Shown here piece after piece: positions 2,553-55,713 of a stretch of 64,000 nucleotides of DNA. Within the stretch, counting starts at the first letter, position 1, and each line of letters begins with the position of its first letter. The stretch lies in the IMG/VR virus record IMGVR_UViG_3300008113_000003, positions 1-64,000 of that record; one strand, given 5' to 3'. The notes under the pieces are model-generated. The model was not told where the DNA came from. It did not search any database and was given only the letters and a program-made list of their open reading frames with translations. The position numbers were made by a program, and so were the translations under genes.

Positions 2553-2578
2553 GAAAAGGATTTTGTCTAATGGTGTAA

Positions 2579-3091
2579 TTATCTTTTTAATGTGATTATT
2601 GCGAAATAATAATCTTCATCATATTCGACATCTATGTCAGAGTTTTCTCTAATATCGTAATGACACATATCACAATCCCACAAAGCCGTTCTAACACCCC
2701 TCTTAAACTCTTCCATGTCAACAACGTTAAAAGGATCGATATGACACGTCAAAACTTTCGGGAGATACTTATCCTCAAGTTCTTTGTGATAATCCCGTAG
2801 AGCCAGCCAATTAGGGTCCTCAACGCCATGTAGTTTCTCATTATGGTTATCGTACCAAACATCACTTAATCTTTTAGCTTCAGCAAACTCTTCTGGGGTA
2901 ACGGTGATCACCCTACTAGTGTGAATCATATCAACATCAAGACAGGGTAAATCCTTCCTAACGATCTGCTCACCAACATAATACCCGATTTGGTATTCCA
3001 TTGTCATCTCTTTGATCCACTTAATCCTTGCGTTGCGGATTTCTTCACGCTCTTCAGGCGTTATATCAAATATTTTATTGCGCTTTATCAT
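2579..3091 (-). CDS. hypothetical protein
   Basis: ORF in tightly packed operon; start adjusted to MIKRNK. Confidence 0.65.
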   Translation of the reverse strand: MIKRNKIFDITPEEREEIRNARIKWIKEMTMEYQIGYYVGEQIVRKDLPCLDVDMIHTSRVITVTPEEFAEAKRLSDVWYDNHNEKLHGVEDPNWLALRDYHKELEDKYLPKVLTCHIDPFNVVDMEEFKRGVRTALWDCDMCHYDIRENSDIDVEYDEDYYFAIITLKR

Positions 3092-3092
3092 A

Positions 3093-3497
3093 CTATTTTT
3101 GTTTATCAATTCTAATTACCGAACCCTGACCATACATTACTTGAATGTAATAAGACCCTAATTTATACATTTCACCAGTAAATTGGTTAGCGTAAATCTC
3201 ATATTCATCACCAACCTCAGAACCGTACTTCTCAGCTACCCCAAGTAAAATCCAAAATAATTTTTCACGTGGTTCATAACCTCTCCTATATTCACGATCT
3301 CTATATTTATCGGAACCATACCAGTTATCAAGATGTTCTATTGATCCGTCAATATCATCCTTAATACGATTCCACATACGATCAACCCATCGATCTTTAT
3401 ACTCGTCTTCTCGTCTAAGTTTCTCCGCAAATTTTTCCAAAGATTCTTTTCCTTCAGGGGAATCAAAGAATGCGTTTATTTCCTCAATGGTCATCAT
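3093..3497 (-). CDS. hypothetical protein
   Basis: ORF track, ATGA overlap with upstream gene. Confidence 0.65.
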   Translation of the reverse strand: MMTIEEINAFFDSPEGKESLEKFAEKLRREDEYKDRWVDRMWNRIKDDIDGSIEHLDNWYGSDKYRDREYRRGYEPREKLFWILLGVAEKYGSEVGDEYEIYANQFTGEMYKLGSYYIQVMYGQGSVIRIDKQK

Positions 3498-4237
3498 TGT
3501 TCTGTTGTTGGTTTAAGCCACATACCCGTACCAAACATGATCTCAAGTATCCTCGGGTTAATTATTCTAATCTTCTCAAACAACTCAAGGGTTTTTAACG
3601 TGTCATGTTTCATCATCTTGAATACCTCATCTCTGATTCTTTCTTGTGAAACAACCAGTTCAAGTTTATCAACCACACTGTCCATCAAACAAGTTTCCAT
3701 TATTGATGTTGAGATGGTAAATCCTTTGGTAATTGAGAATCTAAACGCTCTTAATAACCTCAACGGATCATCCAACATAGTATCTTTAGCATCCAATGGG
3801 GTGATCAACACTTTGTTCTCCAAAGCTGACATACCATCAAAAAAGTCAATGATATTACCATTCTCATCTTTTGCAAGTGCGTTCAAAGTAAAATCCCTAC
3901 GCTGTAAGTCATCATGTAAAGTCCCAGGAAGAACAATTGGTTGTCTTGTATCTTTGAAATAACCAACTTCTTTACGGGCCATAACAAAGTCAGCCACACC
4001 CTCATATTTGTGGTTCTTAGGGAATTTCGCCCTGATTGTAAAGCAATCATTTGTTACCAAGAAGATTTCAAAACCCTCTTCCTTAAGGTAATTCTCAAGC
4101 ACATCAAACATATCGGGTGCAGAGTAATGGGTCAATAGTAACTTCTCGTCAGGAACGGCAACATAGTCAACGTCCTTAGATTGAAGCCCTAAGATCTCAT
4201 CTCTTACTTTTCCACCTACTTCATAAAACTTAAACAT
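3494..4237 (-). CDS. cca: tRNA nucleotidyltransferase (CCA-adding)/poly(A) polymerase family, short form
   Basis: VGGKVRD...DVDY, DLQRRDFTLNALA, DDPLRLLRAFRF, SQERIRDE class II NTase motifs. Confidence 0.85.
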   Translation of the reverse strand: MFKFYEVGGKVRDEILGLQSKDVDYVAVPDEKLLLTHYSAPDMFDVLENYLKEEGFEIFLVTNDCFTIRAKFPKNHKYEGVADFVMARKEVGYFKDTRQPIVLPGTLHDDLQRRDFTLNALAKDENGNIIDFFDGMSALENKVLITPLDAKDTMLDDPLRLLRAFRFSITKGFTISTSIMETCLMDSVVDKLELVVSQERIRDEVFKMMKHDTLKTLELFEKIRIINPRILEIMFGTGMWLKPTTEQ

Positions 4238-32398: not shown

Positions 32399-32447
32399 GT
32401 TTAAAAATTTTTTTTAATGTATTATCTCAAAGAACCCCTTTTTCTTG

Positions 32448-32536
32448 CGGAAGGTACTGGATTCGAACCAGTGGATCCCTTTTCGGAGATCAACAGTTTA
32501 GCAAACTGCCGCATTCGGCCTCTCTGCCAACCTTCC
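32448..32536 (-). tRNA. tRNA-Ser(GCT)
   Basis: GGAAGGT acceptor, GCAGT-TTGCTAA-ACTGT, long variable arm; CCA not encoded. Confidence 0.92.
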
Positions 32537-32540
32537 GATG

Positions 32541-32614
32541 TGGTCCCACTTGGGATCGAACCAAGCACCTACTGATTATGAGTCAGTTGCTCTAACCGAA
32601 TGAGCTATAGGACC
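32541..32614 (-). tRNA. tRNA CAT anticodon, probably Ile2 (lysidine type)
   Basis: GGTCCTATAGCTCA...ACTGA-CTCATAA-TCAGT; Ile2 vs elongator Met is inferred. Confidence 0.85.
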
Positions 32615-32619
32615 AAATT

Positions 32620-32704
32620 CGGTGGGGAGTAGTCACGGCCAGCTCTGATCCTTCCTCACCTATCTTATAACCGTGGCAAAATCTGGCTCGACCCTAGTTA
32701 TAAT
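32620..32704 (-). ncRNA. candidate structured RNA between tRNAs
   Basis: Hairpins TATAAC/GTTATA and GGTGAGGA/TCCCCACC; loops carry complementary GCCAG/CTGGC. Confidence 0.45.
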
Positions 32705-32705
32705 G

Positions 32706-32793
32706 TGGCGGAGAGTGAGGGATTCGAACCCCCGTTAGCTTTCACTAAAACAGTTTTCAAGACTGCCGCATTCGACCGCTCTGCCAACTCTCC
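32706..32793 (-). tRNA. tRNA-Ser(TGA)
   Basis: GGAGAGT acceptor, GCAGT-CTTGAAA-ACTGT, CCA encoded. Confidence 0.93.
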
Positions 32794-33545: not shown

Positions 33546-33581
33546 AAAATTAGGGCGATATAAAATAATACCGCCCGTTAG

Positions 33582-33964
33582 TGGAGATGAGGGGATTCGA
33601 ACCCCTGTCTTGTCTAGCCATTAATTAACCCTCGTTCACATGCTTATTCAGTTTTGCTAAACTGACAAACTTCACAATTCCCTTATTTTTACGGTTCGGT
33701 TTACTGAGAACTAATCTTCCGCTCGCTGTTACGGTAGCGAATACCGTTTTGCAGTTTTGGGTGACTGTTGTCAGCCAAGCTTTCGCTTAGACTAATTCTA
33801 GATCTGCAAACTCAACAGACTGACCGTTAAACGTGATGTTTCCGTCAGCATCGATAAAGCTCTCGCCATTTAAAACTGTATATAGGTTATTAAAGTGTTT
33901 CCAATACTAACACTGCATGCATCAAATTAAAGAACGTATCTATCAATCAATTCCAGTCATCCCC
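33582..33964 (-). ncRNA. ssrA: tmRNA; tag ORF 33787-33867 encodes (A)GESFIDADGNITFNGQSVEFADLELV
   Basis: 5' GGGGATG pairs with 3' CATCTCC-A with G3:U70; T-arm GGGGTTCGAATCCCC; 383 nt; no anticodon arm. Confidence 0.92.
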
Positions 33965-39340: not shown

Positions 39341-39994
39341 TTATCTATTCGCTTTTGTATAAACCTCAAATTTTGATAAATCTGGGTAAGGTAATTCTAA
39401 ATCTTCATTATGTTTTGGTTTACCTTGTATATCATAAAATTGCCCCATAAGTAGTAAACCTCTAGTTGCTAACTCTGGCATCATATAGTAATTCCACCCC
39501 AACATATCCAAATTATCATCATGATAAGAACATTCACGTCTACCAGAATATCTGGCACGTTTAAACCAAAGATAAGCTTCGTGACTATCTGTCAAAATAG
39601 CACCACCCTTTGATAATTTGAAGTGTTTGTAAGGCCCTGTAAATGAGATACACATGTGTGTCCCAGTTTTATACATATTGTTTGTAAAACTTAATGCGGA
39701 ATCCCAAACATTACTACCTTTAAGTTCGTAGGCACCTTTGATGGTTTTACCTTCAACAGGTTCAAAATCTACTTTTAAACCATTATGTATGATTTCACAA
39801 GGAACCGATGGATACGTCCTACTAGGTATAGTAATTGTATCAACTTTTATAGATTTTTTTACATTTTTTTCGTAATATAACGCCAAGAATAAAGCGTTAC
39901 TTTGGTTATCAACTGTAACCACATAAGGAGCACCAGTATAATCGGATAGTGCTTTTTCGAAATCTTCAGTTATTTTATAAACACCGTTTGCCAT
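39341..39994 (-). CDS. DegT/DnrJ/StrS sugar aminotransferase (short form)
   Basis: FEKAL, TYPSVP, DSA, SF..YK, KGGAIL, GWNY.M. Confidence 0.82.
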   Translation of the reverse strand: MANGVYKITEDFEKALSDYTGAPYVVTVDNQSNALFLALYYEKNVKKSIKVDTITIPSRTYPSVPCEIIHNGLKVDFEPVEGKTIKGAYELKGSNVWDSALSFTNNMYKTGTHMCISFTGPYKHFKLSKGGAILTDSHEAYLWFKRARYSGRRECSYHDDNLDMLGWNYYMMPELATRGLLLMGQFYDIQGKPKHNEDLELPYPDLSKFEVYTKANR

Positions 39995-40063
39995 ATATTT
40001 TTTTATATAATTATATGAAAATAAACGGAAAAAACAAGTGTTTAGAATAACATATTGGAAAAA

Positions 40064-40140
40064 TGGAGCCTGAAGAGGGATTCGAACCCCCGACATCCTC
40101 ATTACAAGTGAGGCGCTCTGGCCAGCTGAGCTATTCAGGC
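40064..40140 (-). tRNA. tRNA-Thr(TGT)
   Basis: CCTCA-CTTGTAA-TGAGG; CCA encoded. Confidence 0.93.
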
Positions 40141-40144
40141 AATT

Positions 40145-40217
40145 TGGTCTGGATCAGAGGCCTTCTGCCAGACGAGACCTCGTAGTTGACTTTCGTCAGA
40201 GCTTACCGAGACACCAT
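40145..40217 (-). ncRNA. candidate structured RNA
   Basis: TGAC-GAAA-GTCA tetraloop, CTCG/CGAG, TCTGG/CCAGA, closing TGGT/ACCA. Confidence 0.45.
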
Positions 40218-40221
40218 TTTT

Positions 40222-40332
40222 AAAAAACCCCGACCACCATTTCAGTCCGAAGACATGCTTTCAGTGAACTTGGATCCTAATCCCGTTTCTTCGGGTCGTT
40301 CACTGGTGGCACCAGCCTCTGTGAGGGTTTTT
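40222..40332 (-). ncRNA. candidate structured RNA
   Basis: AAAAAACCC/GGGTTTTTT, CAGTGAAC/GTTCACTG, GTC-TTCG-GAC. Confidence 0.5.
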
Positions 40333-40334
40333 TG

Positions 40335-40425
40335 TGGCTGACACAGGACTCGAACCTGCACTGGGCAACCTTACAACCTTTCGGTCTTGGGGGCTTGGGC
40401 ACCATCCCGCATTACGCAGTCAGCC
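40335..40425 (-). ncRNA. tRNA-like RNA without canonical anticodon arm
   Basis: GGCTGAC/GTCAGCC-A acceptor, GCAGGTTCGAGTCCTGT T-arm, expanded middle with GAAA tetraloop. Confidence 0.6.
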
Positions 40426-40429
40426 ATTT

Positions 40430-40690
40430 TTCCCCACCTTGAGATTACAGATGAGTAGTCATATCGGTTTGTTTACTTTGAAACAACCTGCTGGGCATCC
40501 CCGTTAAAAAAAGTCAAACTACTGGGAGCTTCTGTTACCTAGCTTTATTCCCACGAGACTGGCGTTTTATAGAGCCACATCCAGTTTCTACCCATGGGAT
40601 AGTCTTTTACGTGGATATTAGGATGTCCAGTCCGATACCCTATCAAGTTTAAATGAGACATTGACAAGTCTGCTGAGTATCTCTCACCCA
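40430..40690 (-). ncRNA. candidate large structured RNA(s), about 260 nt
   Basis: Nested CTTGA/TCAAG, TATCGG/CCGATA, CTGGACATCC/GGATGCCCAG; 5' hairpin GAGATA-CTCAGCA...TGTCTC. Confidence 0.5.
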
Positions 40691-40693
40691 TTG

Positions 40694-40767
40694 TAGTGAT
40701 AACGAGACTCGAACTCGTAACCTAATGCGTATAAGGCATGTGCTCTCACCAATTGAGCTATATCACT
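40694..40767 (-). tRNA. tRNA-Ile(TAT)
   Basis: AGTGATA acceptor, ATGC-CTTATAC-GCAT, ACGAG-TTCGAGT-CTCGT. Confidence 0.85.
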
Positions 40768-40801
40768 AGCATGTGCTCTCACCAATTGAGCTATATCACT
40801 A
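40736..40801. repeat. 33-bp tandem duplication of the tRNA-Ile 5' half
   Basis: gcatgtgctctcaccaattgagctatatcacta twice. Confidence 0.95.
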
Positions 40802-40805
40802 GTTA

Positions 40806-40883
40806 TTACCATGGTCTGCCTTGTAGTACAGACTGTACCCCTTTAAGTGACTCACTAACCCTAGGTGTGGGTAGCATGGCAAT
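40806..40883 (-). ncRNA. candidate three-way-junction RNA
   Basis: TTGCCATG/CATGGTAA closing TACCC/GGGTA and GTCTGT/GCAGAC. Confidence 0.45.
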
Positions 40884-40885
40884 TG

Positions 40886-41007
40886 TAGTCAGGACAGGAC
40901 TTGAACCTGTATTCTCTATTATTATCACCAAGTTTCGGTTACATTGTTTCTGTTTGCTTGGTATAGAGTTTAGGATACTTTCAGCGTCTACATTCCGCCA
41001 CCTGACT
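40886..41007 (-). ncRNA. tRNA-like RNA (AGTCAGG scaffold) with non-tRNA insert
   Basis: AGTCAGG/CCTGACT-A, Leu-like D arm, ACAGGTTCAAGTCCTGT; insert CTCTAT/ATAGAG, ACCAAG/CTTGGT. Confidence 0.65.
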
Positions 41008-41169
41008 ATTTCACTTTACGGTCCAAAGTGTAAGCAGGTTTAGTTGCGGACTTTCCTTCCTGATGGGGGCTCTTTTCGTGACACGTACACCATTCTTACG
41101 AACAGTCCCATTGGTCATCACTGGCACGTTATCCATCTTTTTAACACGTAGCCACCGTGTTGCTCATCG

Positions 41170-41260
41170 TAGTCAGGACAGGATTCGAACCTGAACTCCC
41201 CATTATAGGGAGCGTGATACAGCCCCCGAAGCAGCTGTGACACCCATTTGCCACCTGACT
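41170..41260 (-). ncRNA. tRNA-like RNA (second AGTCAGG scaffold)
   Basis: Same acceptor and T-arm as 40886-41007, different middle; no 7-nt U33 anticodon loop. Confidence 0.65.
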
Positions 41261-41469
41261 ATTTGAGGGAGAGAGCCCTCAGTGTTGTGTGGTGTACCGC
41301 CATCAGCCAATAGTTTAAGTTTGTTGTTTAACCACCCTTAACTTAAAATAACTGTTATGACCGCACTCTCTTTTCTCAAGAGAACAACACAATGGTGCTA
41401 GAGGTTGGTTTACATTCAGTGACCATGGCTTGTACTTCGCCTCAAGGGTCAAGCCCTATACCTCTATCG

Positions 41470-41541
41470 TAGTCGGTACGGGATTCGAACCCGTGTGGCA
41501 AGGATGAAAACCTTGAATCCTAACCCCTAGATGAACCGACC
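41470..41541 (-). tRNA. tRNA-Glu(TTC)
   Basis: CAAGG-TTTTCAT-CCTTG. Confidence 0.9.
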
Positions 41542-41546
41542 AAATA

Positions 41547-41685
41547 AAAACAATGATGGAGTACCCGTCTCGCTCCATTCTTAACAGCTTCATCAGAGTT
41601 TTCTCTGGGCCCAGGCTGAGGGTGCTGAATTCCGATTCCACTCTGGATTGTCGACATCCGTTGAGTGGGGAAAACCATTGTTTTT
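41547..41685 (-). ncRNA. candidate multi-stem RNA
   Basis: AAACAATG/CATTGTTT closing CCACTC/GAGTGG, CAGAG-AAAA-CTCTG, ATGGAG/CTCCAT. Confidence 0.5.
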
Positions 41686-41687
41686 TG

Positions 41688-41759
41688 CTGTGATGGGGAA
41701 TTCCGAGATCCCGACCTGAGAGTTAACAGCTCCCTGCTCTGCCTCTGAGCTACATCACA
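41688..41759 (-). tRNA. tRNA-Asn(GTT) with non-canonical T-loop
   Basis: GGGAG-CTGTTAA-CTCTC; T-arm GGGATCTCGGAATTCCC lacks GTTC. Confidence 0.82.
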
Positions 41760-41764
41760 ATTTG

Positions 41765-41879
41765 CGGGGATGAGAGGAATCGAACCTCTGGTTCAGGCTT
41801 GAGATGCAAAATTATATGCTGTATGGAATCTCATCAGATTCACTTTTTTTACAGCGTGTTACCACTACACCACACCCCC
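41765..41879 (-). ncRNA. tRNA-like RNA whose anticodon arm is replaced by a TGAGAT-..ATACAGCA..-ATCTCA module
   Basis: GGGGGTG/CATCCCC-G acceptor, D arm, AGAGGTTCGATTCCTCT T-arm. Confidence 0.7.
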
Positions 41880-41883
41880 AATT

Positions 41884-42084
41884 ACTAATGAGTCGACCAA
41901 ATTTTTTACCAGTGCGGAATAAAGAAGGCTATTGGTGTGTGCCTTTCATACTCAGTTGGGATTGCGGCCCCATGAGTTCCCGATGCGCCATTGTCTTTCA
42001 TTAACTTTTCTCCGTCCTATCTGTTGTGGGATTCTGGCAGTGTTCCCTCAGGATACTCGTTTAATTACTCTTTCATCATTAGTT
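41884..42084 (-). ncRNA. candidate rod-like RNA, about 200 nt
   Basis: ACTAATGA/TCATTAGT ends; TGCCAG/CTGGTA, CGGA/TCCG, ACTCA/TGAGT nested helices. Confidence 0.5.
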
Positions 42085-42085
42085 G

Positions 42086-42157
42086 AGCGGATAGTGAGAA
42101 TCGAACTCACATCTCCAGCTTGGAAGGCTGGAGTAATAGCCATTATACGACATCCGC
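42086..42157 (-). tRNA. tRNA-Gly(TCC)
   Basis: CCAGC-CTTCCAA-GCTGG. Confidence 0.92.
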
Positions 42158-42158
42158 A

Positions 42159-42234
42159 TGGAGCGGGAGACCAGGTTCGAACTGGCGACCCCAACCTTGG
42201 CAAGGTTGTGCTCTACCGACTGAGCTACTCCCGC
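42159..42234 (-). tRNA. tRNA-Gly(GCC)
   Basis: AACC-TTGCCAA-GGTT; CCA encoded. Confidence 0.95.
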
Positions 42235-42450
42235 ATTTGTGACTACTCCCTGGGAAGTTTCGTCACGATTAACGTGAATGGGGTGATCAAACCCACTAAC
42301 ATCACGGGCATAGGTTTTCACAATAAACCATTACCAAAAACGCCAGTTTTTAACACCCAAAACTGAATAAACGGTCCGACTCTTTGTAACCCCGATTTTA
42401 AGTGTATGTTACTACCGTCTCGAACAGACCCCTACTGCGAACACTCCCAG

Positions 42451-42595
42451 TAGCCCCAGTAGGAATCGAACCCACCTTGTAAATTACATGCAATAATCCT
42501 TAGACTTTCGCTCCGATCCTAGTATTAAGGAGTGTCTAACCATTTTACCATCATTTACCCACTCGCAGCTACGTTAACGTGCTTGCTATAGAGCT
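42451..42595 (-). ncRNA. tRNA-like RNA with long insert
   Basis: AGCTCTA/TGGGGCT-A acceptor, GTGGGTTCGATTCCTAC T-arm; insert TTAGAC/GTCTAA, CTCC/GGAG. Confidence 0.55.
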
Positions 42596-42602
42596 ATTTT
42601 AG

Positions 42603-42675
42603 TAGCGGGAGAGGGATTCGAACCCCCGACCTCTAGGTTATGAGCCTAGCGAGCTACCTCTGCTACTACCCCGCA
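42603..42675 (-). tRNA. tRNA-Met(CAT), initiator-like
   Basis: 1:72 mismatch, GCGGGG acceptor, AGCTCG, CTAGG-CTCATAA-CCTAG. Confidence 0.88.
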
Positions 42676-42843
42676 ATATCTTATGGTTTTGCCTCACCAA
42701 AAAGCTTCCATTGTATGAAGTCCAATAGATAAAGTCCTCGGTTTCTTAGTAAAACTAACTTTCAGGAACTTCACCTGCCTTCTAGTATACATGTACCTCT
42801 CAGTTAAGAGTCAGTACGAGCTTTCTTACTTTAGTTAGTTTTG

Positions 42844-42917
42844 TGATCCCGACAGGATTCGAACCTGTGACCTACTGCTTAGAAGGCAGTTGCTCTATCC
42901 AGCTGAGCTACGAGACC
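42844..42917 (-). tRNA. tRNA-Arg(TCT)
   Basis: ACTGC-CTTCTAA-GCAGT. Confidence 0.94.
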
Positions 42918-42965
42918 AAATTTCGGAATGCGTTTTTTGTCAAAGTAAAAGTTTAAGATAAAATA

Positions 42966-43095
42966 CAGGATGAATTGTACGTGCTCTAACCAACTGAGCT
43001 ACTCTGAACGTGCCACTTAAGGCTGTGTTCAAAGGTTGGATTCGAACCAACGACCACGAGGTTAACAGCCTAAAGAAATATGCAGAAACCATCCT
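42966..43095 (-). ncRNA. circularly permuted tRNA-Asn(GTT)-like RNA with Y-RNA (YrlA)-like closing stem
   Basis: Order anticodon-T arm-acceptor 3' strand-linker-acceptor 5' strand-D arm, enclosed by AGGATG/CATCCT. Confidence 0.8.
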
Positions 43096-43111
43096 CATTA
43101 TTTTATCTTTG

Positions 43112-43185
43112 CGGTCCATACGGGACTCGAACCCGTGATCTCTGCCGTGACAGGGCAGCGTCCACTCCAGCTGGACTGATGGACC
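43112..43185 (-). tRNA. tRNA-Asp(GTC)
   Basis: CTGCC-CTGTCAC-GGCAG. Confidence 0.93.
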
Positions 43186-43196
43186 GTTTTGATTTT

Positions 43197-43213
43197 CCAA
43201 TATGTCAAAGAAC
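43197..43213 (-). promoter_or_regulatory. boxA-like antitermination element
   Basis: GTTCTTTGACATATTGG. Confidence 0.55.
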
Positions 43214-43255
43214 ATGATAGGGAACCACGGTTTTATGGCAAAGCCAACCTATCTT

Positions 43256-43331
43256 TGGTGGTGCGGGCAGGAATCGAACCTGCGACACAGGGATTTTCAG
43301 TCCCTTGCTCTACCAACTGAGCTACCGCACC
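43256..43331 (-). tRNA. tRNA-Phe(GAA)
   Basis: AGGGA-CTGAAAA-TCCCT; CCA encoded. Confidence 0.95.
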
Positions 43332-43337
43332 AAATAT

Positions 43338-43393
43338 CGGGATGGATTTTGTTTGTATTTATCCGTTACATGTTAATGTGCTGTAACCATCCC
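43338..43393 (-). ncRNA. minimal Y-like hairpin GGGATGG-TTACAGCA...CCATCCC
   Basis: 7-bp helix followed by the TACAGCA motif shared with other array RNAs. Confidence 0.65.
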
Positions 43394-43411
43394 CTTTATC
43401 TTTCGATGCTA

Positions 43412-43512
43412 CAAAATTAAGAAGGATTTTTTAAACTTCCAAATGTTTGCAACATTTTTTTTTATTTTTTTCTCAAAGAACGTTTTCTTTTCAGAATTGT
43501 GGTACAAAACTA
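43412..43512 (-). promoter_or_regulatory. two TAnnTTTG promoters (43505-43512, 43412-43419) and boxA-like GTTCTTTGAGA (43471-43481) heading the tRNA array
   Basis: Motif matches, each with upstream TTTG. Confidence 0.65.
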
Positions 43513-43574
43513 ATAACTAATTTCTTTACCACCAAATATATTTTAAAGTTTTTTCATTTTTTTTCTTTTAAACG

Positions 43575-43602
43575 AAAAAACCCAGAGATCTCTCCCTGGG
43601 TT
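43575..43602 (-). terminator. intrinsic terminator of putative attenuator
   Basis: AACCCAGGG-AGAGAT-CTCTGGGTT-TTTT. Confidence 0.75.
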
Positions 43603-43637
43603 CCTTATTGTATCTAGTATATTTTTACTTGAGATTT

Positions 43638-43703
43638 TTACAATAGGAACCCTGGGCGATTCTCATCACCAAATGTTCTTCCTATATTTGTAAAGTTTCT
43701 CAT
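43638..43703 (-). CDS. putative attenuator leader peptide MRNFTNIGRTFGDENRPGFLL
   Basis: Manual ORF; 3' end complementary to the terminator 5' arm; codons match downstream tRNAs. Confidence 0.7.
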   Translation of the reverse strand: MRNFTNIGRTFGDENRPGFLL

Positions 43704-43764
43704 CGAAATTCTTATTATTTTTCTATATATACTTCAATATTACGAAAAGTTTCAAAAAAAACAA

Positions 43765-44118
43765 TTATTTTTCTAAAAAATTTTTCAAACTATGAATTGT
43801 TTGTCTGAAAATGTAGTCTTTAGATTTTTGCTCAGTTGGTAATTCTTCGTATGGAACATAGCATGGGTGTTCCTTTTTATCCGCATCTTTAACAGGTCCA
43901 TACTTCCAACCTTCTTCAGTTTTTTGTTTCATCCATGAGTCATGTGATGCTGAAGGTGATGCTTCAGGGTTATTGATGTGAAACTGCACACCGTTAACTG
44001 CTGATGATTTTTGCCAATCTGGTGCATTATCCCAATCTGGTTGTGAATGATCACCTATGCTTTCGCAATAAGCTCTATTCAATTCATGTGCTACTCTAGC
44101 GATTTCTTGTATAGTCAT
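43765..44118 (-). CDS. RyR-domain protein
   Basis: HDSWM..K..EGWKYG..KD..KKEHPCYVPYEELP..QKSKD; start adjusted. Confidence 0.82.
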   Translation of the reverse strand: MTIQEIARVAHELNRAYCESIGDHSQPDWDNAPDWQKSSAVNGVQFHINNPEASPSASHDSWMKQKTEEGWKYGPVKDADKKEHPCYVPYEELPTEQKSKDYIFRQTIHSLKNFLEK

Positions 44119-44128
44119 AACTTTATTT

Positions 44129-44596
44129 TTATCTACAATAATTATCCGCTGCTGAGCTTGCGGCCCATGCATCTGGCTTACCAACGGCATCATATCCCAT
44201 TGATTTAGCGTAACCAATACCCGCTTCGTACAATTGATTTGACTTCTCACTTTGTTTTGAATTGTAATCAACGTGCACAGTTATTTTAACATTAATGTCC
44301 TTCAAAGATTCAGCAACATTAACTGATCTAACAACTTCAGACCATAACTTTGGGTGCATGTTTGCTACAGGATCACCTTTCTTTGGTCTTGGTTCAATTT
44401 CTTTAAGGTGTATAACATGGGCACCTCTACCAAACTCATATAAACAAATTGTTGTAACATAATTAACTTTGTCACCAACTTCTTGTGAGTCGCAGCCAAT
44501 ATAAACCTCAGAATCTGGGTGTTGTCCTAACCACTCTGATACATACTCGGACACATTCTCAATAATAACTCCATCTCTTGTCCTAAAATTTTTCAT
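44129..44596 (-). CDS. RNase H-like YkuK (DUF458) family protein
   Basis: YIGCDSQ, EV.RS, VHVDYN, KPDAWAASSAAD. Confidence 0.85.
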   Translation of the reverse strand: MKNFRTRDGVIIENVSEYVSEWLGQHPDSEVYIGCDSQEVGDKVNYVTTICLYEFGRGAHVIHLKEIEPRPKKGDPVANMHPKLWSEVVRSVNVAESLKDINVKITVHVDYNSKQSEKSNQLYEAGIGYAKSMGYDAVGKPDAWAASSAADNYCR

Positions 44597-44599
44597 CTC

Positions 44600-46189
44600 T
44601 TATATTTTAAATGTGGTGAAACCTGTTTCACCGTTGTTGTCTTTAATAAAATTAATATGTTGTGCTCTCCCATCTTTATGGATAATCACATGCGATTGTA
44701 ACCATGAGCTTGGGCCAATATTATAACCAACTCTTAGTTTTGTTGAGGTACCAACCGCTAAAGCACCGTCTTTTCTCCCTGGTGAATGGTAATGACCAAC
44801 AATGATCTTCGTGTTTAGTGTTCTAAACTGATTTAGAGACCCTCTGCTGCCATTTGAACCCACATCGCCATGTTGTCCTAGTTCCCAATCTTTAACAATG
44901 TAAGAAGCGTTCCTATTCAATGTGATGAACTTAGGAAACTTCTGGTTAATTATCTCTGGTATAACACCTTTAACATCACCTTTAGCGTATTGTCTCAGAA
45001 GCATTGCGGAGTATTCCATATACATCAAAGAGTTTTTACTTGTTGGTTGTCTTTTCCAATCCTCATTCTTTAACCATCGATCTAAAAAGTCATCATGGTT
45101 ACTTCTAACAATAACAACATTTTTATAATCTCTAAAAGACTCCAACCCCTCGAGCATATTATTTATCTCGTTTTCAACTGAGTTGGTGCCGTTCATTTCT
45201 TTCGCAAACTGAATAAACGGATCTTTCATTTCATGGTGGCTAATTGAGTTACCGTCAAACACGTCATGTAGGATAACATGTTCTGGTTTCATTTTACCCA
45301 ATAATTCATGTGTCTTATCAATCACATCTTGATCATGATGTCCATAGTGAATGTCACCAAACACAATTGCTGACAATGAATCAACTTTACTCACCTGACC
45401 ACCCTCAACTTTATGACAAAGATCGGTAAAATTACCAGTTCTATCATGTGCTGTTACTTGTCTAACATAGAATGTATCCTCATCTTTAATCTCAACGATC
45501 GCAAAACCATATGTGTGGTGAAACTCACCTTTCTTACCAGCTTTTGAATCCGTGTAGTTTAATTTGGTTACAGCGCCTGTGGTTAACATCATTTTTGGTT
45601 TATTACCCTCAAGAACTGAAATCATTTCAAGCTGTACTTTCGGTGCGCCAAAGATGCACGAATTAATACCACTCACACCTTGCAAACCGCTCATTGGGTT
45701 GGTTGCTGTTGGTTGGATCTTAAAGTCGGACATGATTGACACATATTTGTGCACATCATGTCTATTCGCATCCAAATAAGGTACAACAGCGCTGTCCCAC
45801 TCTTCATGGTCTTTATCTGTAAACACTGATGTTGGGTTTTTGTAACGTCCAGCAATAACGTGTATATCAGCACCTAAAAAGTCAGCATATGCTTTTATAT
45901 TTTCAAAGAATGGTTTATGTACTGGTGTGTCATTCTGAGCCCAAGTAATAAGGAACATTTTTTGTTCTTTATTTGTTTGTCTCTGCTTAGCCATCAGATA
46001 TTGTTCTGACTCAACCTCAACCTTTTCTTTAAAGTTTAATTTTTCAGAACACCATTTTCTAACTGTTCTTTCGGATTTACCAAATAAATCCATAAGCAAT
46101 TTCATTCTATCATCCCAAGATAAATCCTTGTCGGTGTAAATCTCTCTTGCTTTGTTAATTTGTTGTTCTGTTAAATCTTTAAATTTCAT
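44600..46189 (-). CDS. HTH plus metallophosphoesterase-type nuclease (T5 A1-like by recollection)
   Basis: N-terminal SERTVRKW; GDIH, HDVFD, SNHD, HGD.GSNGSRG, GHYH. Confidence 0.7.
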   Translation of the reverse strand: MKFKDLTEQQINKAREIYTDKDLSWDDRMKLLMDLFGKSERTVRKWCSEKLNFKEKVEVESEQYLMAKQRQTNKEQKMFLITWAQNDTPVHKPFFENIKAYADFLGADIHVIAGRYKNPTSVFTDKDHEEWDSAVVPYLDANRHDVHKYVSIMSDFKIQPTATNPMSGLQGVSGINSCIFGAPKVQLEMISVLEGNKPKMMLTTGAVTKLNYTDSKAGKKGEFHHTYGFAIVEIKDEDTFYVRQVTAHDRTGNFTDLCHKVEGGQVSKVDSLSAIVFGDIHYGHHDQDVIDKTHELLGKMKPEHVILHDVFDGNSISHHEMKDPFIQFAKEMNGTNSVENEINNMLEGLESFRDYKNVVIVRSNHDDFLDRWLKNEDWKRQPTSKNSLMYMEYSAMLLRQYAKGDVKGVIPEIINQKFPKFITLNRNASYIVKDWELGQHGDVGSNGSRGSLNQFRTLNTKIIVGHYHSPGRKDGALAVGTSTKLRVGYNIGPSSWLQSHVIIHKDGRAQHINFIKDNNGETGFTTFKI

Positions 46190-49643: not shown

Positions 49644-51326
49644 TTAATTATCGTATTTGATAATCGCAACTTCTGGACCTCTTTTATTTTTACTTAAAGA
49701 GGTTATCTTTTCTCCGCTTATTGAGGTATCATCAATACAAATAGCAATAATCTCGGGTAATGAACTTAATTTATCGGGGATATTTGATAATTTTTCGTTA
49801 CCGTGAAAATCCACCAAATATAATTTATTACAATCCAATATGTCATCTGTAATTGTTTTTATATTACAGTTAGATGCTGTTAATCTAGCTAAACTACTCA
49901 ACGTGTTTATACCAGTTGGTAACTCTTTTAATTTACTGTTGTAATCCAAAACAATGTCAGTTAAATTAACCAAACCAGTTAAATCAAATTTATTTTCAAT
50001 TTTGCAGCCAGATAAATCAATAAAATTTAAACCTGTTAACTGATTAACCCAAGACGGAACCTCAGTCAACAAATTATTTCTAACCTTTAAATATTTTAAG
50101 TTCTTAAGGTTTTTGATTGACTCGGGTAATGACTCTAAACCGCAATCAGAAAAGTCTAATTTTTCCAAACTTTCGATGTCACCAATTTCATTTAAAATAT
50201 CAGAATCCATTTTATTACCACTGAAATCCAAAACTTTGGGTTTAGACTCCTTCAACATTTTAATGATTTGATCACCGTAACCTAATTTCAATAAAAACTG
50301 AATGTCATCATTAACTTTGTTCTTTAACTGTCTTTTTGGTAAAACAGTTTTAGTAATGTACTTTTTAAAATAGTCTTTAATATCTTTATTTGTATAAAAG
50401 AAGTCGTTTATGTCAATCGGTCTGTCTGGAACGTTCATATATTGCTGATCCTCAAAATGGAATTGCATGCGGACATTTGGGTCGTTTTTAGCGGCTTTCT
50501 TGGAACCATAACCTTTCTTAATTAACACGAATAACTCACCACGTCCATGATATGAGTCAAACATATTACCATATCTTGTACCAGCAGTACACCAAGTTGT
50601 GTATTTACCAAATTCAACGTTTGCTTCTCTATCATGAGTTATAACAATAACCCAATCTTTGTTTTCAAAAACTAATTCAGCACGCCCAATCATTGGGTCG
50701 TATTCCTTATTTTTTTCAATAAAGTTTTGGTGGTTTTGTATACATCTTAATTCCTTCGGATCTAGAGTGTGTACATTATCAGAAGAACCGTCATCATCCA
50801 TCATAGTGTATGGTAACACAACCTCATTAAGCGTTTGGTAATCTGGGTATTTGTTAATATCTCTCTTACTTTCCGCTAAAACGTTTGTTTTTTTAAGGAA
50901 AGCAAAAGTTTCCAATGACGATTTAACAGTTGTATATAAATCCTCATAAAAATTATGGTTAATAACGGCATCAGGGTTATTTGGGGTGTAAGAGATTAAT
51001 TGGTTTCTATATAAACCGAGTAACCATTGCAAGTTTTCTTTATTTGGGGTTGGATCGCACTCAACTAGAAAGCTAAAAGCAACCTCTCTTGGTGTTTTTT
51101 CTTCACCCAAATAATCGGTTGGGGGTATCCCCATATTTGATAGGAAGGAGAATAACCTGTAATCATAGAAAAGATCTTCTGGGTCATTATACACCATATG
51201 GTGCAAACTAGTAAAACCCTCGTGTCTATTGTCAAACTTAGTTAACTGTTGTCTTTTAACAGCCTTTCTATATGTCGCCTTAAATGAGTTATCATAGAGA
51301 TACTCAACTCTAGATTTTTTTTCCAT
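49644..51326 (-). CDS. leucine-rich-repeat protein with N-terminal phage TxWCT domain
   Basis: LEKLDFSDCGLESLPESIKNL, LKYLKVRNNLLTEVP, LARLTASNC; about 8 LRRs. Confidence 0.85.
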   Translation of the reverse strand: MEKKSRVEYLYDNSFKATYRKAVKRQQLTKFDNRHEGFTSLHHMVYNDPEDLFYDYRLFSFLSNMGIPPTDYLGEEKTPREVAFSFLVECDPTPNKENLQWLLGLYRNQLISYTPNNPDAVINHNFYEDLYTTVKSSLETFAFLKKTNVLAESKRDINKYPDYQTLNEVVLPYTMMDDDGSSDNVHTLDPKELRCIQNHQNFIEKNKEYDPMIGRAELVFENKDWVIVITHDREANVEFGKYTTWCTAGTRYGNMFDSYHGRGELFVLIKKGYGSKKAAKNDPNVRMQFHFEDQQYMNVPDRPIDINDFFYTNKDIKDYFKKYITKTVLPKRQLKNKVNDDIQFLLKLGYGDQIIKMLKESKPKVLDFSGNKMDSDILNEIGDIESLEKLDFSDCGLESLPESIKNLKNLKYLKVRNNLLTEVPSWVNQLTGLNFIDLSGCKIENKFDLTGLVNLTDIVLDYNSKLKELPTGINTLSSLARLTASNCNIKTITDDILDCNKLYLVDFHGNEKLSNIPDKLSSLPEIIAICIDDTSISGEKITSLSKNKRGPEVAIIKYDN

Positions 51327-51582: not shown

Positions 51583-52036
51583 TTGAATTTATGTAATCAA
51601 CTGATTCAAATAAATTCTTACCTCTTTCCTGCGTTTTGATGAATTTCTTAACAAGCTGACCCGCAACTGCGTTTGCCTCGTCTTCTATTTCACCACCAAT
51701 GTCTTGTACTGGTTTTACAATACGATCATCTTCATATTGTTTCTTATGAACCATTTCATGGGCCACACTTCTCATGACATCACCTAACATTCTGTTTTTT
51801 GCGTAAACACAAACAAGTTTATCTTTATCACGATAAAATGCTGTTGTTACAACACCATTTTTATCACGATCATGGCATAACAAACATTTGAAGTCGCCAG
51901 ACAAGTCTAATTCTTTACAACAAAACTCAATAAAAGCTTTTGCTGTCTCAAACTTATCCTCAGGGAACTCAAGACCATCTTCGATTTCTAAATCGCAAGA
52001 CGGACCTTTACCTTTTATAACTTCTAATAGTCTCAT
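51566..52036 (-). CDS. zincin-like metallopeptidase domain protein
   Basis: RSVAHEMVH..Q, EDEANA. Confidence 0.7.
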   Translation of the reverse strand: MRLLEVIKGKGPSCDLEIEDGLEFPEDKFETAKAFIEFCCKELDLSGDFKCLLCHDRDKNGVVTTAFYRDKDKLVCVYAKNRMLGDVMRSVAHEMVHKKQYEDDRIVKPVQDIGGEIEDEANAVAGQLVKKFIKTQERGKNLFESVDYINSTKLLL

Positions 52037-55000
52037 TATAATAAATTGTTTATGTCTCTATTTTTAAACGAACCTGCGGTTCCGTTTGTCCCAAACAGTA
52101 AATAATTAACAGGTGTTGCTTGAACGTATTGTTGTTTTTGTGTATTAACAACCAACCAATCATAACCATCGTATAATAACTCAACACTTTCTAAAGTTTC
52201 TAACGGGAAGAAATATCCACCATTTGTAACTCTAGTGTTTATGTTAGATGCGATAATTCTATCTTGTGTACCCCCTGAAACCCATTTACTCGCAACAATT
52301 AAATCATTTAAATTATTTAAGTTGTTTCTTTTTGTGACAAACTTAATAACTCTACTCTCATCGTTTGCGCTTACAAATGGTGGTAATACAACAATATAGT
52401 TTTCTGTTGATCCCGTGTTAACCACATCTAAAACAACATATGTTAATTTAGCTGTAAAACCTGTTACCTGTAATTCTTTAACCTGTATTGTATCCGTATT
52501 AGAACTTGTTGTAAATATAAGATTAAATGTATCACCAGTAAAGCTATTTTCATCTAAGAAAATAAATCCATGTGTTGTTACACCTTCTTTTGATTGCACA
52601 TCGTCAGTTGGATCGAAATCAACTTGGACTGTTGTGCTATCACTGTTTTGTATTTCAAGTATTGTATTAGTTAATGTTACGCCTGTTACAGCTGTGCCAC
52701 CACTTGTTGATGTAAATCCGCTTGTACCTGATGAACCAGATACAGCCATCACATCCCAATCAGGGTTTGAGTCTGGTGGGTTTGAACCTATACCAGAAGC
52801 CGTTGTGTTTGTAAATATATAAGTTATTCCGTTGTAATAAACAACATCATTTAAGCCATAAGATATTGTTGACCCAGTTATTGGATCACCGTCCCAAACA
52901 CCTAACCAATTAAAGCTATATCCTGAAGAACCACTTGTTCCTGATTCACCTGAAGATCCTGATGTACCATCAACGCCTGAGGTTCCAGAAGAACCCGAAC
53001 TCCCTGATGAACCCGCAATAGCGCCAACCGAAGTCACTACAAAAGAATAATATGAATTACCTTCAGTATAATAACCTACTGAATGTGTTGTTGAATCATT
53101 ATTGCTAATGTATAATCTAACAATCATTCTATTTGTTGGGTCAATAGTTGTTGTTGGTAATACAATATCCATATTAACTTCAACAGGAATTATCGAACTA
53201 ACCCAACCAATTAGTACAACATTTGATGTTATTGTCGGTCCAATCGGTGTTCCAGTGTTATCAGCTAATTGTATTTCAACATAAGCATCAATATCATCAT
53301 TACTTGCAGGTTTCAAATAATGTAAATGAAATCTTTGCACACCACCAGGTATTACCGAAAACCCTAATTCAGGTGTTATATAATCAGAAACCAATACGTT
53401 TTGTTGTCCGCTAGTTAAATTTGTTGTTACTGTTTGTGTTGTTCCTGTTGATGGTTGTGTCGATAAAACTTTGTAACCTGAAACATCGCTGTTTTGGCTC
53501 TCATTAAAATAATATGTTTGACCAACCGAAATACCACTCACACCTGATGTTCCGCTTTCTCCTGAAGTTCCTGATTCCCCAGATGTTCCTGAAGATCCAC
53601 TTTCTCCGCTCGTTCCAGACTCACCTGATGTACCACTCTCTCCTGAGGTTCCGTTTTCACCAGATGTTCCACTTTCTCCTGAAGTTCCTGATTCCCCTGA
53701 TGTTCCTGATTCCCCTGATGTTCCTGATTCACCGCTTGTTCCTGATTCCCCTGATGTTCCTGATTCCCCTGATGTTCCTGATTCACCGCTTGTTCCAGAC
53801 TCGCCTGATGTACCATCAACACCGTTTATACCAGAAATACCTGATGTTCCTGATTCACCTGATGTACCACTCTCTCCAGAACTACCTGAAGAACCAGACT
53901 CACCTGATGTTCCTGATTCACCTGAAGTACCACTCTCTCCAGAACTACCTGAAGAACCAGATTCTCCACTTGTACCAGATTCTCCGTTTGTACCAGATTC
54001 ACCTGAAGATCCAGCAGAACCACTCTCACCGCTTGTACCAGATTCTCCTGAACTACCTGAAGAACCACTCTCACCGCTTGTACCAGATTCTCCTGAAGAA
54101 CCACTCTCACCGCTTGTACCAGATTCTCCTGAAGTACCACTCTCTCCTGAGGTTCCTGAAGATCCAGATTCGCCACTTGTACCAGATTCTCCAGAACTAC
54201 CTGAAGAACCAGATTCTCCACTTGTACCATTCTCACCTGAAGTACCGCTCTCACCAGAAATACCTGACGTACCATCAACACCGTTTACGCCAGAAATACC
54301 AGAGGTTCCTGATTCACCAGATGTTCCTGAAGATCCAGACTCACCTGATGTACCACTCTCTCCTGAGGTTCCGTTTTCACCTGATGTTCCTGAAGATCCA
54401 GATTCACCAGATGTTCCAGATGTTCCCGATTCACCACTTGTTCCTGAAGATCCAGATTCACCAGATGTTCCTGATTCACCAGATGTTCCTGATTCACCAG
54501 ATGTTCCTGAAGATCCAGATTCACCAGATGTTCCTGAAGATCCAGATTCACCAGATGTTCCTGATTCACCGCTTGACCCAGAGGAGCCACTTTCACCAGA
54601 TGTTCCGCTTTCGCCAGAAATACCTGACGTACCATCAACACCGTTTACACCCGAAATACCACTTGTTCCTGATTCTCCTGAGGTTCCTGATTCTCCTGAG
54701 GTTCCTGAGGTTCCTGATTCTCCTGAGGTTCCTGAAGATCCTGATTCACCGCTTGTTCCTGAAGATCCTGATTCTCCTGAGGTTCCTGATTCACCGCTTG
54801 TTCCTGAAGATCCTGATTCTCCTGAGGTTCCTGATTCACCACTTGTTCCTGATTCACCACTTGTTCCTGAAGATCCTGATTCTCCTGAGGTTCCAGCAAC
54901 ACCGCCAGTTCCACCACCGCCACCAGATATATCAATAGTTACAATTTTATAGCCACCAACTCCTGTTGTTGAGCTAATTCCGTTAATACCAGTACCAGTA

Positions 55001-55713
55001 AACTCTATATAACTTGCACCAGCGATACCACTTGTACCGTATTTAATAACAGGGAACTCATCAGTGTAATTTAATGCGTCTAAATTATATTGAGCTTCAG
55101 CTGATCCAGCTTGTAATGTCGCATAAACACTTGCTGGTATAGCCCATTGTAAAGATTTATTATCAGTTATTTCAGATATAGCATTATAAGCTGCGTCTAA
55201 GGGTACTCTTTGTAAACTTGAATATGATCCATCTTCAGCAAATTTAGCAAAAAATGAAATAGTAGATGATGAGGGTCTTTCTGTTACCTTTATTATCTCA
55301 AATAGGTTAAATATACCGATTAATTGGATAAAGGCATTTGCATCAACAGCATTGTTAATAATTTTAAAACCCTCAACAACATCATTCGTTGTTGTTAAAC
55401 CATTAACTTCTAAATACGTTGTATCTTCGCAATAAAAAACACCATCTGGTGTTGCGGTTGTTATCGTAATACCTGTATTTGTACCTGTCGCTAGATTATC
55501 AATTTCAAATGAATTGGCACCAATATTTATACTAGTAATTACAGATCCAGTTGGTATATCTGTACCTGAAACCACCAATCCCTCAACCAAATTGTTTATA
55601 TCAACGACATTTGTAATGGTGTTACTACTATTTGTTGTATCACCAGTTATATTGGGGCCGTAGGTTACCCAACTTGGTATTAGTATTGTACCTGTAATTA
55701 AACTATGACTCAT
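52036..55713 (-). CDS. collagen-like (Gly-X-Ser) fibre protein, 1225 aa
   Basis: About 450 aa of GES/GTS/GSS triplets; carbohydrate-binding-like module (YGLNDVVYYNG..PDW). Confidence 0.8.
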   Translation of the reverse strand: MSHSLITGTILIPSWVTYGPNITGDTTNSSNTITNVVDINNLVEGLVVSGTDIPTGSVITSINIGANSFEIDNLATGTNTGITITTATPDGVFYCEDTTYLEVNGLTTTNDVVEGFKIINNAVDANAFIQLIGIFNLFEIIKVTERPSSSTISFFAKFAEDGSYSSLQRVPLDAAYNAISEITDNKSLQWAIPASVYATLQAGSAEAQYNLDALNYTDEFPVIKYGTSGIAGASYIEFTGTGINGISSTTGVGGYKIVTIDISGGGGGTGGVAGTSGESGSSGTSGESGTSGESGTSGESGSSGTSGESGTSGESGSSGTSGESGSSGTSGESGTSGTSGESGTSGESGTSGISGVNGVDGTSGISGESGTSGESGSSGSSGESGTSGESGSSGTSGESGSSGTSGESGTSGESGTSGESGSSGTSGESGTSGTSGESGSSGTSGENGTSGESGTSGESGSSGTSGESGTSGISGVNGVDGTSGISGESGTSGENGTSGESGSSGSSGESGTSGESGSSGTSGESGTSGESGTSGESGSSGESGTSGESGSSGSSGESGTSGESGSAGSSGESGTNGESGTSGESGSSGSSGESGTSGESGTSGESGSSGSSGESGTSGESGTSGISGINGVDGTSGESGTSGESGTSGESGTSGESGTSGESGTSGESGTSGESGTSGESGTSGENGTSGESGTSGESGTSGESGSSGTSGESGTSGESGTSGVSGISVGQTYYFNESQNSDVSGYKVLSTQPSTGTTQTVTTNLTSGQQNVLVSDYITPELGFSVIPGGVQRFHLHYLKPASNDDIDAYVEIQLADNTGTPIGPTITSNVVLIGWVSSIIPVEVNMDIVLPTTTIDPTNRMIVRLYISNNDSTTHSVGYYTEGNSYYSFVVTSVGAIAGSSGSSGSSGTSGVDGTSGSSGESGTSGSSGYSFNWLGVWDGDPITGSTISYGLNDVVYYNGITYIFTNTTASGIGSNPPDSNPDWDVMAVSGSSGTSGFTSTSGGTAVTGVTLTNTILEIQNSDSTTVQVDFDPTDDVQSKEGVTTHGFIFLDENSFTGDTFNLIFTTSSNTDTIQVKELQVTGFTAKLTYVVLDVVNTGSTENYIVVLPPFVSANDESRVIKFVTKRNNLNNLNDLIVASKWVSGGTQDRIIASNINTRVTNGGYFFPLETLESVELLYDGYDWLVVNTQKQQYVQATPVNYLLFGTNGTAGSFKNRDINNLL
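53530..54900 (-). repeat. 9/18/27-bp coding repeats (GTS-GES-GSS) with GISG(V/I)NGVDG interruptions
   Basis: Directly visible in DNA and protein. Confidence 0.95.

Follow-up and report, generated by a model that had tools for sequence, protein, structure and literature searches.

The locus studied here, in which a short open reading frame (ORF) precedes an array of tRNA genes, raises the question why the codons of this ORF coincide with the tRNAs encoded downstream of it, and whether the ORF takes part in their expression. It lies in a DNA stretch of 64,000 nucleotides (hereafter, the window), positions 1 to 64,000 of a phage genome of about 206 kb that carries a tmRNA gene (IMG/VR UViG 3300008113_000003). 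No close cultured relative was recognized, judged by the best matches of the neighbouring T5 A1-like protein, which came from Maribacter and Flavobacterium phages (42-47% identity). Our analysis indicates that the element is probably a ribosome-mediated transcription attenuator of the trp/his type, which would sense the phage's own isoacceptors and add transcription into the array, and, as part of the same best explanation, that it likely belongs to a family of attenuators preceding tRNA sub-arrays in large phages of Bacteroidota. According to this explanation, inferred from sequence alone, the 21-codon mini-gene probably allows the phage to match the production of tRNAs to their supply. The features of the locus, and the further leader types described below, are listed in Table 1; loci of relatives are given by their L numbers.

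Table 1. Positions of the leader, its predicted regulatory regions and the tRNA array in the window, and of leaders of other types at other loci.
Feature	Position	Strand	Basis or remarks
Putative leader promoter, near-consensus Bacteroidota-type	43735..43765	minus	ATTG (43765-43762), 19 nt, TAATATTG (43742-43735)
Leader ORF, 21 sense codons and TAA (MRNFTNIGRTFGDENRPGFLL)	43638..43703	minus	ATG start; read from sequence
Putative sensor, codons 2-15	43659..43700	minus	each codon read by the ten downstream tRNAs; with the ATG included, all ten are used
Region 1, 5' part of the ORF, predicted to pair with region 2 (anti-antiterminator)	43668..43694	minus	full-length minimum-energy fold
Region 2 (segment A of the earlier note), ORF end including TAA	43638..43657	minus	duplex energies
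Region 3 (segment B of the earlier note), holds the whole terminator 5' arm; predicted antiterminator partner of region 2	43593..43613	minus	duplex energies
Predicted intrinsic terminator (3:4; B:C of the earlier note), 14-bp hairpin, GAGA loop, U6	43575..43606	minus	folding
Consensus Bacteroidota-type promoter, downstream of the terminator	43505..43536	minus	consensus match
Second consensus Bacteroidota-type promoter, downstream of the terminator	43412..43443	minus	consensus match
tRNA array: Phe-GAA, Asp-GTC, Arg-TCT, Met-CAT, Gly-GCC, Gly-TCC, Asn-GTT, Glu-TTC, Ile-TAT, Thr-TGT and three atypical tRNA-like genes	40064..43331	minus	ARAGORN and Rfam
Three atypical tRNA-like genes inside the array	41765-41879, 40886-41007, 41170-41260	minus	
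Type B leaders (core ...T-Y-Q-P-K-Q-(Y)-T-Q-G-G-K-P...)	L056 995-1157; L093 2768-2923; L051 about 1810-1970; many in L221-L290		28-36-codon ORFs and terminator; Pro-TGG starts 60-165 nt downstream, with Gln, Tyr, Thr, Gly, Lys tRNAs after it; about 19 different variants known from IMG/VR
Type C leaders (MR.TLQRQQLLQ...)	L092 5960-6099; L312 1556-; L216 6740-		with terminator, directly upstream of Arg-ACG, Leu-TAG, Gln-TTG, Leu-TAA
Type D leaders (MRT.TNIFDFAFFAAEADE...)	L222 1398-; L239 703-; L288 3625-	minus in L239 and L288	with terminator, upstream of Phe-GAA, Glu-TTC, His-GTG, Asp-GTC, Ala-TGC

An earlier note, made without database searches, had quoted the ORF and ten conventional tRNA genes downstream of it, and had claimed that each of the first 15 codons is read by one of these tRNAs, with all ten used. 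All of this held. The ORF has 21 sense codons followed by TAA, as quoted; the ten tRNA genes were recovered by ARAGORN and Rfam, with the exception of Asn-GTT (41688-41759), which was called by Rfam only (46.5 bits) and whose anticodon was read from the sequence; and, under conservative wobble, 15/15 codons fall within the decoding set of the array, 10/10 tRNAs being used. The claim that these tRNAs cover only about a third of sense codons corresponds to 18 of 61 codons when counted, or to 42% of codon usage in the 48 long ORFs of the window. Further along the ORF, codons 16, 17, and 20 (CGC, CCA, and CTA) are read by no confidently called tRNA of the window, and the TTG codon is read by the distant Leu-TAA alone.

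The codon match is much stronger than expected by chance. The covered run of 15 codons is the longest in all six frames of the 64 kb, the runners-up being 13, 12, and 11 codons long, and among the 1240 ATG-initiated ORFs of at least 15 codons the next-best covered run counted from the start codon is only 7. Under the codon usage of the window, a run of at least 14 codons after the ATG has a probability of 2e-5, and such a run that also uses all nine non-Met tRNAs a probability of about 1e-6; the permutation test suggested by the earlier note is therefore highly significant. The match extends to the choice between synonymous codons. In the core, threonine is encoded by ACA or ACG only, arginine by AGA only, and isoleucine by ATA only, the isoacceptors present in the array being favoured; this bias has p = 0.05 in the window and 0.002 over the states observed in the family. 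The leader is also the sole small ORF with a strong terminator that precedes tRNAs in the window.

The sequence between the sensor and the array has the anatomy of an attenuator. The pairing of the ORF end (segment A) with segment B, and the terminator hairpin B:C that shares B, had both been proposed in the earlier note and were confirmed, with energies of -25.8 kcal/mol for the antiterminator duplex (2:3, 43657-43638 with 43613-43593), a value reached by 0/500 shuffles of the ORF, and -18.3 kcal/mol for the terminator hairpin (3:4). Region 1, which the note had overlooked, completes the 1:2 / 2:3 / 3:4 geometry of the trp attenuator. The 1:2 duplex is modest in the window (-11.9 kcal/mol), and all 12 leaders folded show the 1:2 structure in their full-length minimum-energy fold; in the window, this fold consists of a hairpin within the ORF and the terminator, with z = -4.6 against shuffles. 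In a fold computed without the 3' arm of the terminator, regions 2 and 3 pair with each other, which ties up 11 of the 14 nt of the terminator 5' arm; in the isolated 2:3 duplex, region 3 spans all 14 (14/14). Antiterminator and terminator are thus predicted by folding to be mutually exclusive owing to their shared 5' arm, which is what an attenuator demands. The TAA codon (43640-43638) is situated inside region 2, and therefore a terminating ribosome would mask this region. In type A leaders, as we call the leader of the window and its homologues, the stop codon of the relatives lies 0-9 nt after region 2; in type B it lies about 35 nt beyond, and the sign of regulation is therefore less clear in that type.

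On the minus strand between 44300 and 39300, the leader terminator is the only hairpin followed by a T-run, and no other terminator-like site was found along the read-through path from the leader to the end of the array. In 39500-45500, the built-in terminator scan returned nothing on the minus strand and so missed the hairpin and U6 of the leader, which both folding and our own scan find; since it overlooked a clear terminator, its negatives deserve caution. A degenerate tRNA, a tRNA-like element, and a known RNA family were considered as identities of the element and rejected, as Rfam gave no match on 43575-43765 at the gathering score or at E-values up to 5, with neither T-box nor leader families reported.

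Transcription of the leader could start at its own promoter. The block listed in Table 1 begins immediately past the stop codon of the RyR-domain gene and is near-consensus only; its role as a promoter is inferred, and is supported by its conservation in relatives, types B and D having a perfect TATATTTG at the same place. The consensus used, TTTG-N18-21-TAnnTTTG, is over-represented in the window, with 17 matches where 3.2 would be expected, and the matches are almost always on the coding strand. Two full consensus promoters are found between the terminator and tRNA-Phe, and relatives have one or two at the same place. The expectation that no promoter should separate an attenuator from the genes it regulates is consequently not met here, and the attenuator would modulate expression of the array rather than be its main gate, a caveat that the earlier note had already raised and that held. 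Between the second promoter and tRNA-Phe there is also a hairpin GGGGATGG...CCATCCC (43394-43339, minus strand), conserved at the same place in L002, L025, L092, L029, L031, and L035, which may possibly be a 5' leader or a processing element of the tRNA precursor.

Conservation was analysed at two levels of divergence. In close relatives (L002 and the L025 group), the segment from the promoter-like block through the terminator is near-invariant, whereas the spacers and the downstream promoter region diverge. The sole change in the ORF is CCA to CCT in the L025 clade; it is synonymous, and with it the 2:3 helix becomes perfect (-30.9 kcal/mol). In the same clade, the RyR-domain gene (43765-44271, minus strand) is replaced after its first 50 residues (loci L011-L016), and since the conserved leader module starts at the same point where this gene is replaced, the module is an independent unit. 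The sensor does not vary among the three variants of the window's own clade; the evidence for co-variation between leader and array therefore comes from outside it. Likewise, a search of IMG/VR with a back-translated peptide pattern returned eight contigs with near-identical DNA and no synonymous variants.

Diverged type A homologues were found through synteny with the A1-like protein (L092, L029, L031, and L035) and by pattern scans (L151, L199, and L211). A metagenome scan based on region 2 and the terminator of this second clade gave 36 matches, of which five were true leaders, all close to L029 or L151. The leader is kept as an ORF in L092, L029, L151, L211, L031, and L035, as the earlier note had asked to be checked, and its length remains within 21-25 codons in ten type A variants despite the nucleotide divergence (24-25 codons in the diverged homologues). 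A terminator equivalent is present in every homologue, although its sequence differs in the diverged ones. Region 2 and region 3 change together: GGGTTCC/GGAACCC in the window is opposed by GGGCTTTCTA/TAGAAAGCCC in the diverged relatives, with G:U variants in L151 and L035, and the peptide end G-F-L-L is retained through synonymous change. Column-wise covariation on the MAFFT alignment was abandoned because both helices shift their register by one column between the two clades; helix covariation was assessed instead by per-sequence duplex energies, shuffles, and a cross-pair matrix. In this matrix, cognate region 2/3 duplexes are stronger than cross-clade ones, which points to covariation of the two regions. 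The antiterminator is significant in the window and in most relatives, the exceptions being L031 and the type B leader of L056, where it is not. Between clades, the pairing of region 2 with region 3, like that of the terminator (B:C), is maintained by compensatory change.

In a codon alignment of seven variants, a core of 13 columns has 89/89 codons within the decoding set of the array, even though 33 different states occur in this core, with 12 or more amino-acid replacements, such as I/T/M, G/T/M, T/F, D/G/N, and E/R. Only 10/21 codons in the columns before the core and 5/20 in those after it belong to the set, and of the nonsynonymous single-base neighbours of in-set codons a mere 30% are themselves in-set. 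As the core codons remain in the set through the replacements, selection acts on which tRNA reads the codon and not on the amino acid. The positions of the core are those at which stalling would place the ribosome on region 1 while region 2 stays accessible.

Several details of individual type A loci should be mentioned. The leader of L092 (1747-1824) has ATT twice and no ATA, and its array (2067-4179) is without Ile-TAT and has one CAT tRNA only; ATA does occur in the leaders of L029, L151, and L035, whose arrays contain Ile-TAT or else two CAT tRNAs; in L151, TCA occurs in the leader and Ser-TGA in the array. Differences of the kind seen in L092 and L151 may hint at co-variation on a fine scale, with a single case of each. 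In L031 (2890-3545) and L035 (10399-12006), the type A leader is separated from the array by an insertion that comprises a promoter and at least one protein gene, and these two loci have the weakest antiterminators (-8.8 and -11.5 kcal/mol, respectively); given both features, the attenuator is possibly decaying there.

Three further leader types surfaced through weak profile matches and then in an unbiased survey. The survey took in 175 distinct small ORFs whose ends lie no more than 400 nt before a group of at least four tRNAs on the same strand; all covered runs of at least 11 codons, and one run of 10 codons out of three, belonged to the leader family, the bulk of the ORFs having runs of 0-3. 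The peptides of types B, C, and D are unrelated to that of type A, and each type has a terminator and stands before a different tRNA sub-array. In type B, leaders with a complete array have runs of 11-17 covered codons, with all 7-8 tRNA types used (p about 3e-8); in the protein collection, this peptide is present as 'hypothetical protein' only. Type C has eight consecutive codons from a set of nine codons (p about 7e-8). In the type D leader of L222, 11/12 consecutive codons are covered, which was reached in 0/400,000 simulations. As a side remark, the type D sensor is without a His codon, and its GCC and GCT codons could be read by tRNA-Ala-UGC only with expanded wobble.

Mismatched combinations of leaders and arrays score low, and two types may occur in one genome (A and C in L092, L216, and the L151/L312 contig; D and B in L222 and L288), the genomes with type C also having either a type A leader or a type A array. 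Leader codons thus track array content across types, and the co-variation check proposed in the earlier note is positive, three unrelated leader types matching their own sub-arrays. Many leaders start with ATG AGA ACA and have a common promoter module, which suggests a common scaffold with the sensor rewritten for each array. As for cellular copies, a partial scan of representative cellular genomes with the type B core showed no leader next to tRNAs.

The following mechanism is proposed. A short transcript, initiated at the near-consensus promoter just past the RyR-domain gene or arising by read-through from that gene, would include the 21-codon ORF. First, when all sensed aminoacyl-tRNAs are plentiful, the ribosome would reach TAA and mask region 2, the 3:4 hairpin would form, and transcription would terminate at about 43575. 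Second, when any sensed tRNA is scarce, the ribosome would stall in the sensor over region 1, so that 2:3 forms, the 5' arm of the terminator is hidden, and the polymerase reads through into the tRNA genes. Third, without translation, 1:2 and 3:4 would form and transcription would stop. The net effect would be a negative feedback that tops up the array on demand, above the basal output of the two downstream promoters. Candidate triggers include low tRNA levels early in infection, cleavage of host tRNAs, and poor charging; that host anticodon nucleases are the trigger is speculation.

The his/trp-type reading of the earlier note is accordingly supported as far as the sequence goes, every computational check that the note had suggested having turned out in its favour, while translation of the ORF, termination at the hairpin, read-through driven by stalling, the sign of the response, and its trigger, nucleases included, remain inferences, made without expression data such as 3' ends or ribosome footprints. 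The other caveat of the note also stands, as a ribosome halted at codon 14 or 15 would already overlap region 2 in part. Besides, coupling of transcription and translation is not established in Bacteroidota.

Three rival explanations were weighed. The first, which is unlikely, regards the unit as an independent small gene, encoding a micropeptide or a small RNA and equipped with a promoter and a terminator of its own, so that the hairpin would merely end this gene and the upstream operon. The codon match would then be a translational timer, the peptide being made only once the phage tRNAs are present, and the output would be the peptide and not read-through. This view is favoured by the promoter-like element and the strong terminator of the unit, by the presence of separate promoters for the tRNA array, and by the C-terminal G-F-L-L, which is kept through synonymous change. 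However, the core of the peptide is not conserved, its replacements (at least 12) being mostly non-conservative while every codon stays within the tRNA set, and the peptides of the four leader types are unrelated. The peptide of the window has no match in Pfam or in the protein collection. Moreover, the end of the ORF is complementary to the 5' arm of the terminator to a degree that far exceeds chance, and the two co-vary; a plain terminator would require neither.

The second rival, which we also consider improbable, is an attenuator that senses amino-acid charging (starvation for about nine amino acids) or the overall capacity for translation, and not the isoacceptors of the phage. The mechanism indeed cannot separate a scarce tRNA from an uncharged one, and multivalent attenuators sensing several amino acids exist (ilvGMEDA, thr), which is a point for this rival. 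Against it, the synonymous choice follows the anticodons of the array and not just the amino acids (with the p-values given above), each leader type fits the sub-array directly downstream and not the amino-acid usage of the genome, and the regulated genes are the tRNAs themselves.

Finally, a chance ORF within a conserved terminator/promoter region, its codon match stemming from purine-rich and AT-rich composition and from the choice of 15 codons, a cut-off picked after the sequence had been seen, can practically be ruled out, for, in spite of the 42% of usage that the covered codons make up and of the roughly 0.2 runs of at least 15 codons expected, by an estimate from this coverage, somewhere in six frames of 64 kb, the run has the ATG as its first codon, draws on each of the ten tRNAs, and occupies the only position fit for an attenuator; moreover, diverged homologues show the same property, as do three unrelated leader types whose codon sets differ.

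The preferred reading, a ribosome-mediated attenuator sensing the phage's own isoacceptors, follows known attenuator logic. The leaders of the trp, his, leu, pheA, thr, and ilvGMEDA operons likewise have a short ORF rich in regulatory codons, the 1:2/2:3/3:4 pairings, an intrinsic terminator with a U-tract, and a stop codon whose position makes the terminating ribosome block region 2; in the multivalent thr and ilv leaders, several codon species are sensed at once as well. Unlike these leaders, the phage element precedes tRNA genes and not biosynthetic genes, is encoded by a phage, and has promoters downstream of its terminator. It would sense up to ten isoacceptors, mostly by one to three codons each and with no long run of a single codon, its synonymous choice tracks the downstream anticodons, and it has no match to Rfam leaders (His, Trp, Thr, Leu leaders and others).

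Control of a component of the translation apparatus by aminoacyl-tRNA availability is known from the pheST attenuator of E. coli, with its pheM leader. The likeness lies in the control of a translation component by a leader peptide; pheST, however, senses one tRNA (Phe), controls a synthetase and not a tRNA, and is cellular and not viral. T-box elements also decide between terminator and antiterminator by the state of a particular tRNA and have translation-related targets, but they bind the uncharged tRNA directly, by a specifier codon and the T-box sequence, without a ribosome or an ORF. The phage element instead has a conserved ORF with many sensed codons, and does not qualify as a T-box, for which stem I and the T-box sequence would be diagnostic. 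Phage tRNA arrays have been linked to codon-usage mismatch, host tRNA loss, and anticodon nucleases, and the regulated cargo here is such an array. To our knowledge, no codon-matched leader controlling transcription of phage tRNAs is known, work on the arrays being concerned with what the tRNAs do. The earlier note knew of no phage attenuator sensing many tRNAs either; we found no prior description in Rfam or the protein collection, and no description of a leader or an attenuator for phage tRNA genes in the full-text literature searched. What sets the element apart from known leaders is not the logic but that tRNA genes are the regulated genes, that up to ten isoacceptors are involved with choice at the level of anticodons, and that the element is viral and not the sole gate.

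A bolder reading, towards which we incline with no more than a slight preference, is that large phages of Bacteroidota split their tRNA genes into several operons, each with its own attenuator listing the downstream isoacceptors. Such a system would amount to a modular and self-referential homeostat: a test peptide would be translated as a gauge of the supply of each phage tRNA, and the outcome would set the transcription of the genes encoding that tRNA. It would comprise at least four leader types, that of the window being type A, and could possibly also restore tRNAs cleaved or depleted in the host.

Should the attenuator reading be true, this would be the first known attenuator that steers tRNA genes by reading their own tRNAs, and the most multivalent leader peptide described; phages would then regulate their tRNA arrays by demand instead of merely expressing them. 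The element offers a direct handle on the long-standing question of the purpose of phage tRNAs, be it codon compensation, host shut-off, or anti-defence, and synthetic biology could draw on it as a small, naturally occurring sensor of isoacceptor availability. The match between codons and anticodons can be recognized by computation alone, and other viral tRNA arrays can be screened for it.

The array itself contains, besides the conventional tRNA genes, three atypical ones. The first tRNA-like gene has normal acceptor, D, and T arms, and its anticodon arm is replaced by an insert of 50 nt containing CTGATGAG. The other two have a common AGTCAGG...CCTGACT acceptor stem and long inserts or a long variable arm; according to ARAGORN, one of them is a Pro-CGG of 92 nt, though the decoding identity of none of the three is known.

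Other contents of the window, in addition to the T5 A1-like protein, include a small tRNA cluster (Ser-TGA, Met-CAT, and Ser-GCT) at 32447-32793 and the tmRNA gene (33579-33964, minus strand; 60.7 bits in Rfam), which adjoins tRNA-Leu-TAA; the same pair was found in L092. An LRR protein is encoded at 49644-51326. Collagen triple-helix repeats (Pfam PF01391) characterize two very large proteins, probably fibres, whose genes are located at 52036-55713 and 55728-57950 on the minus strand.
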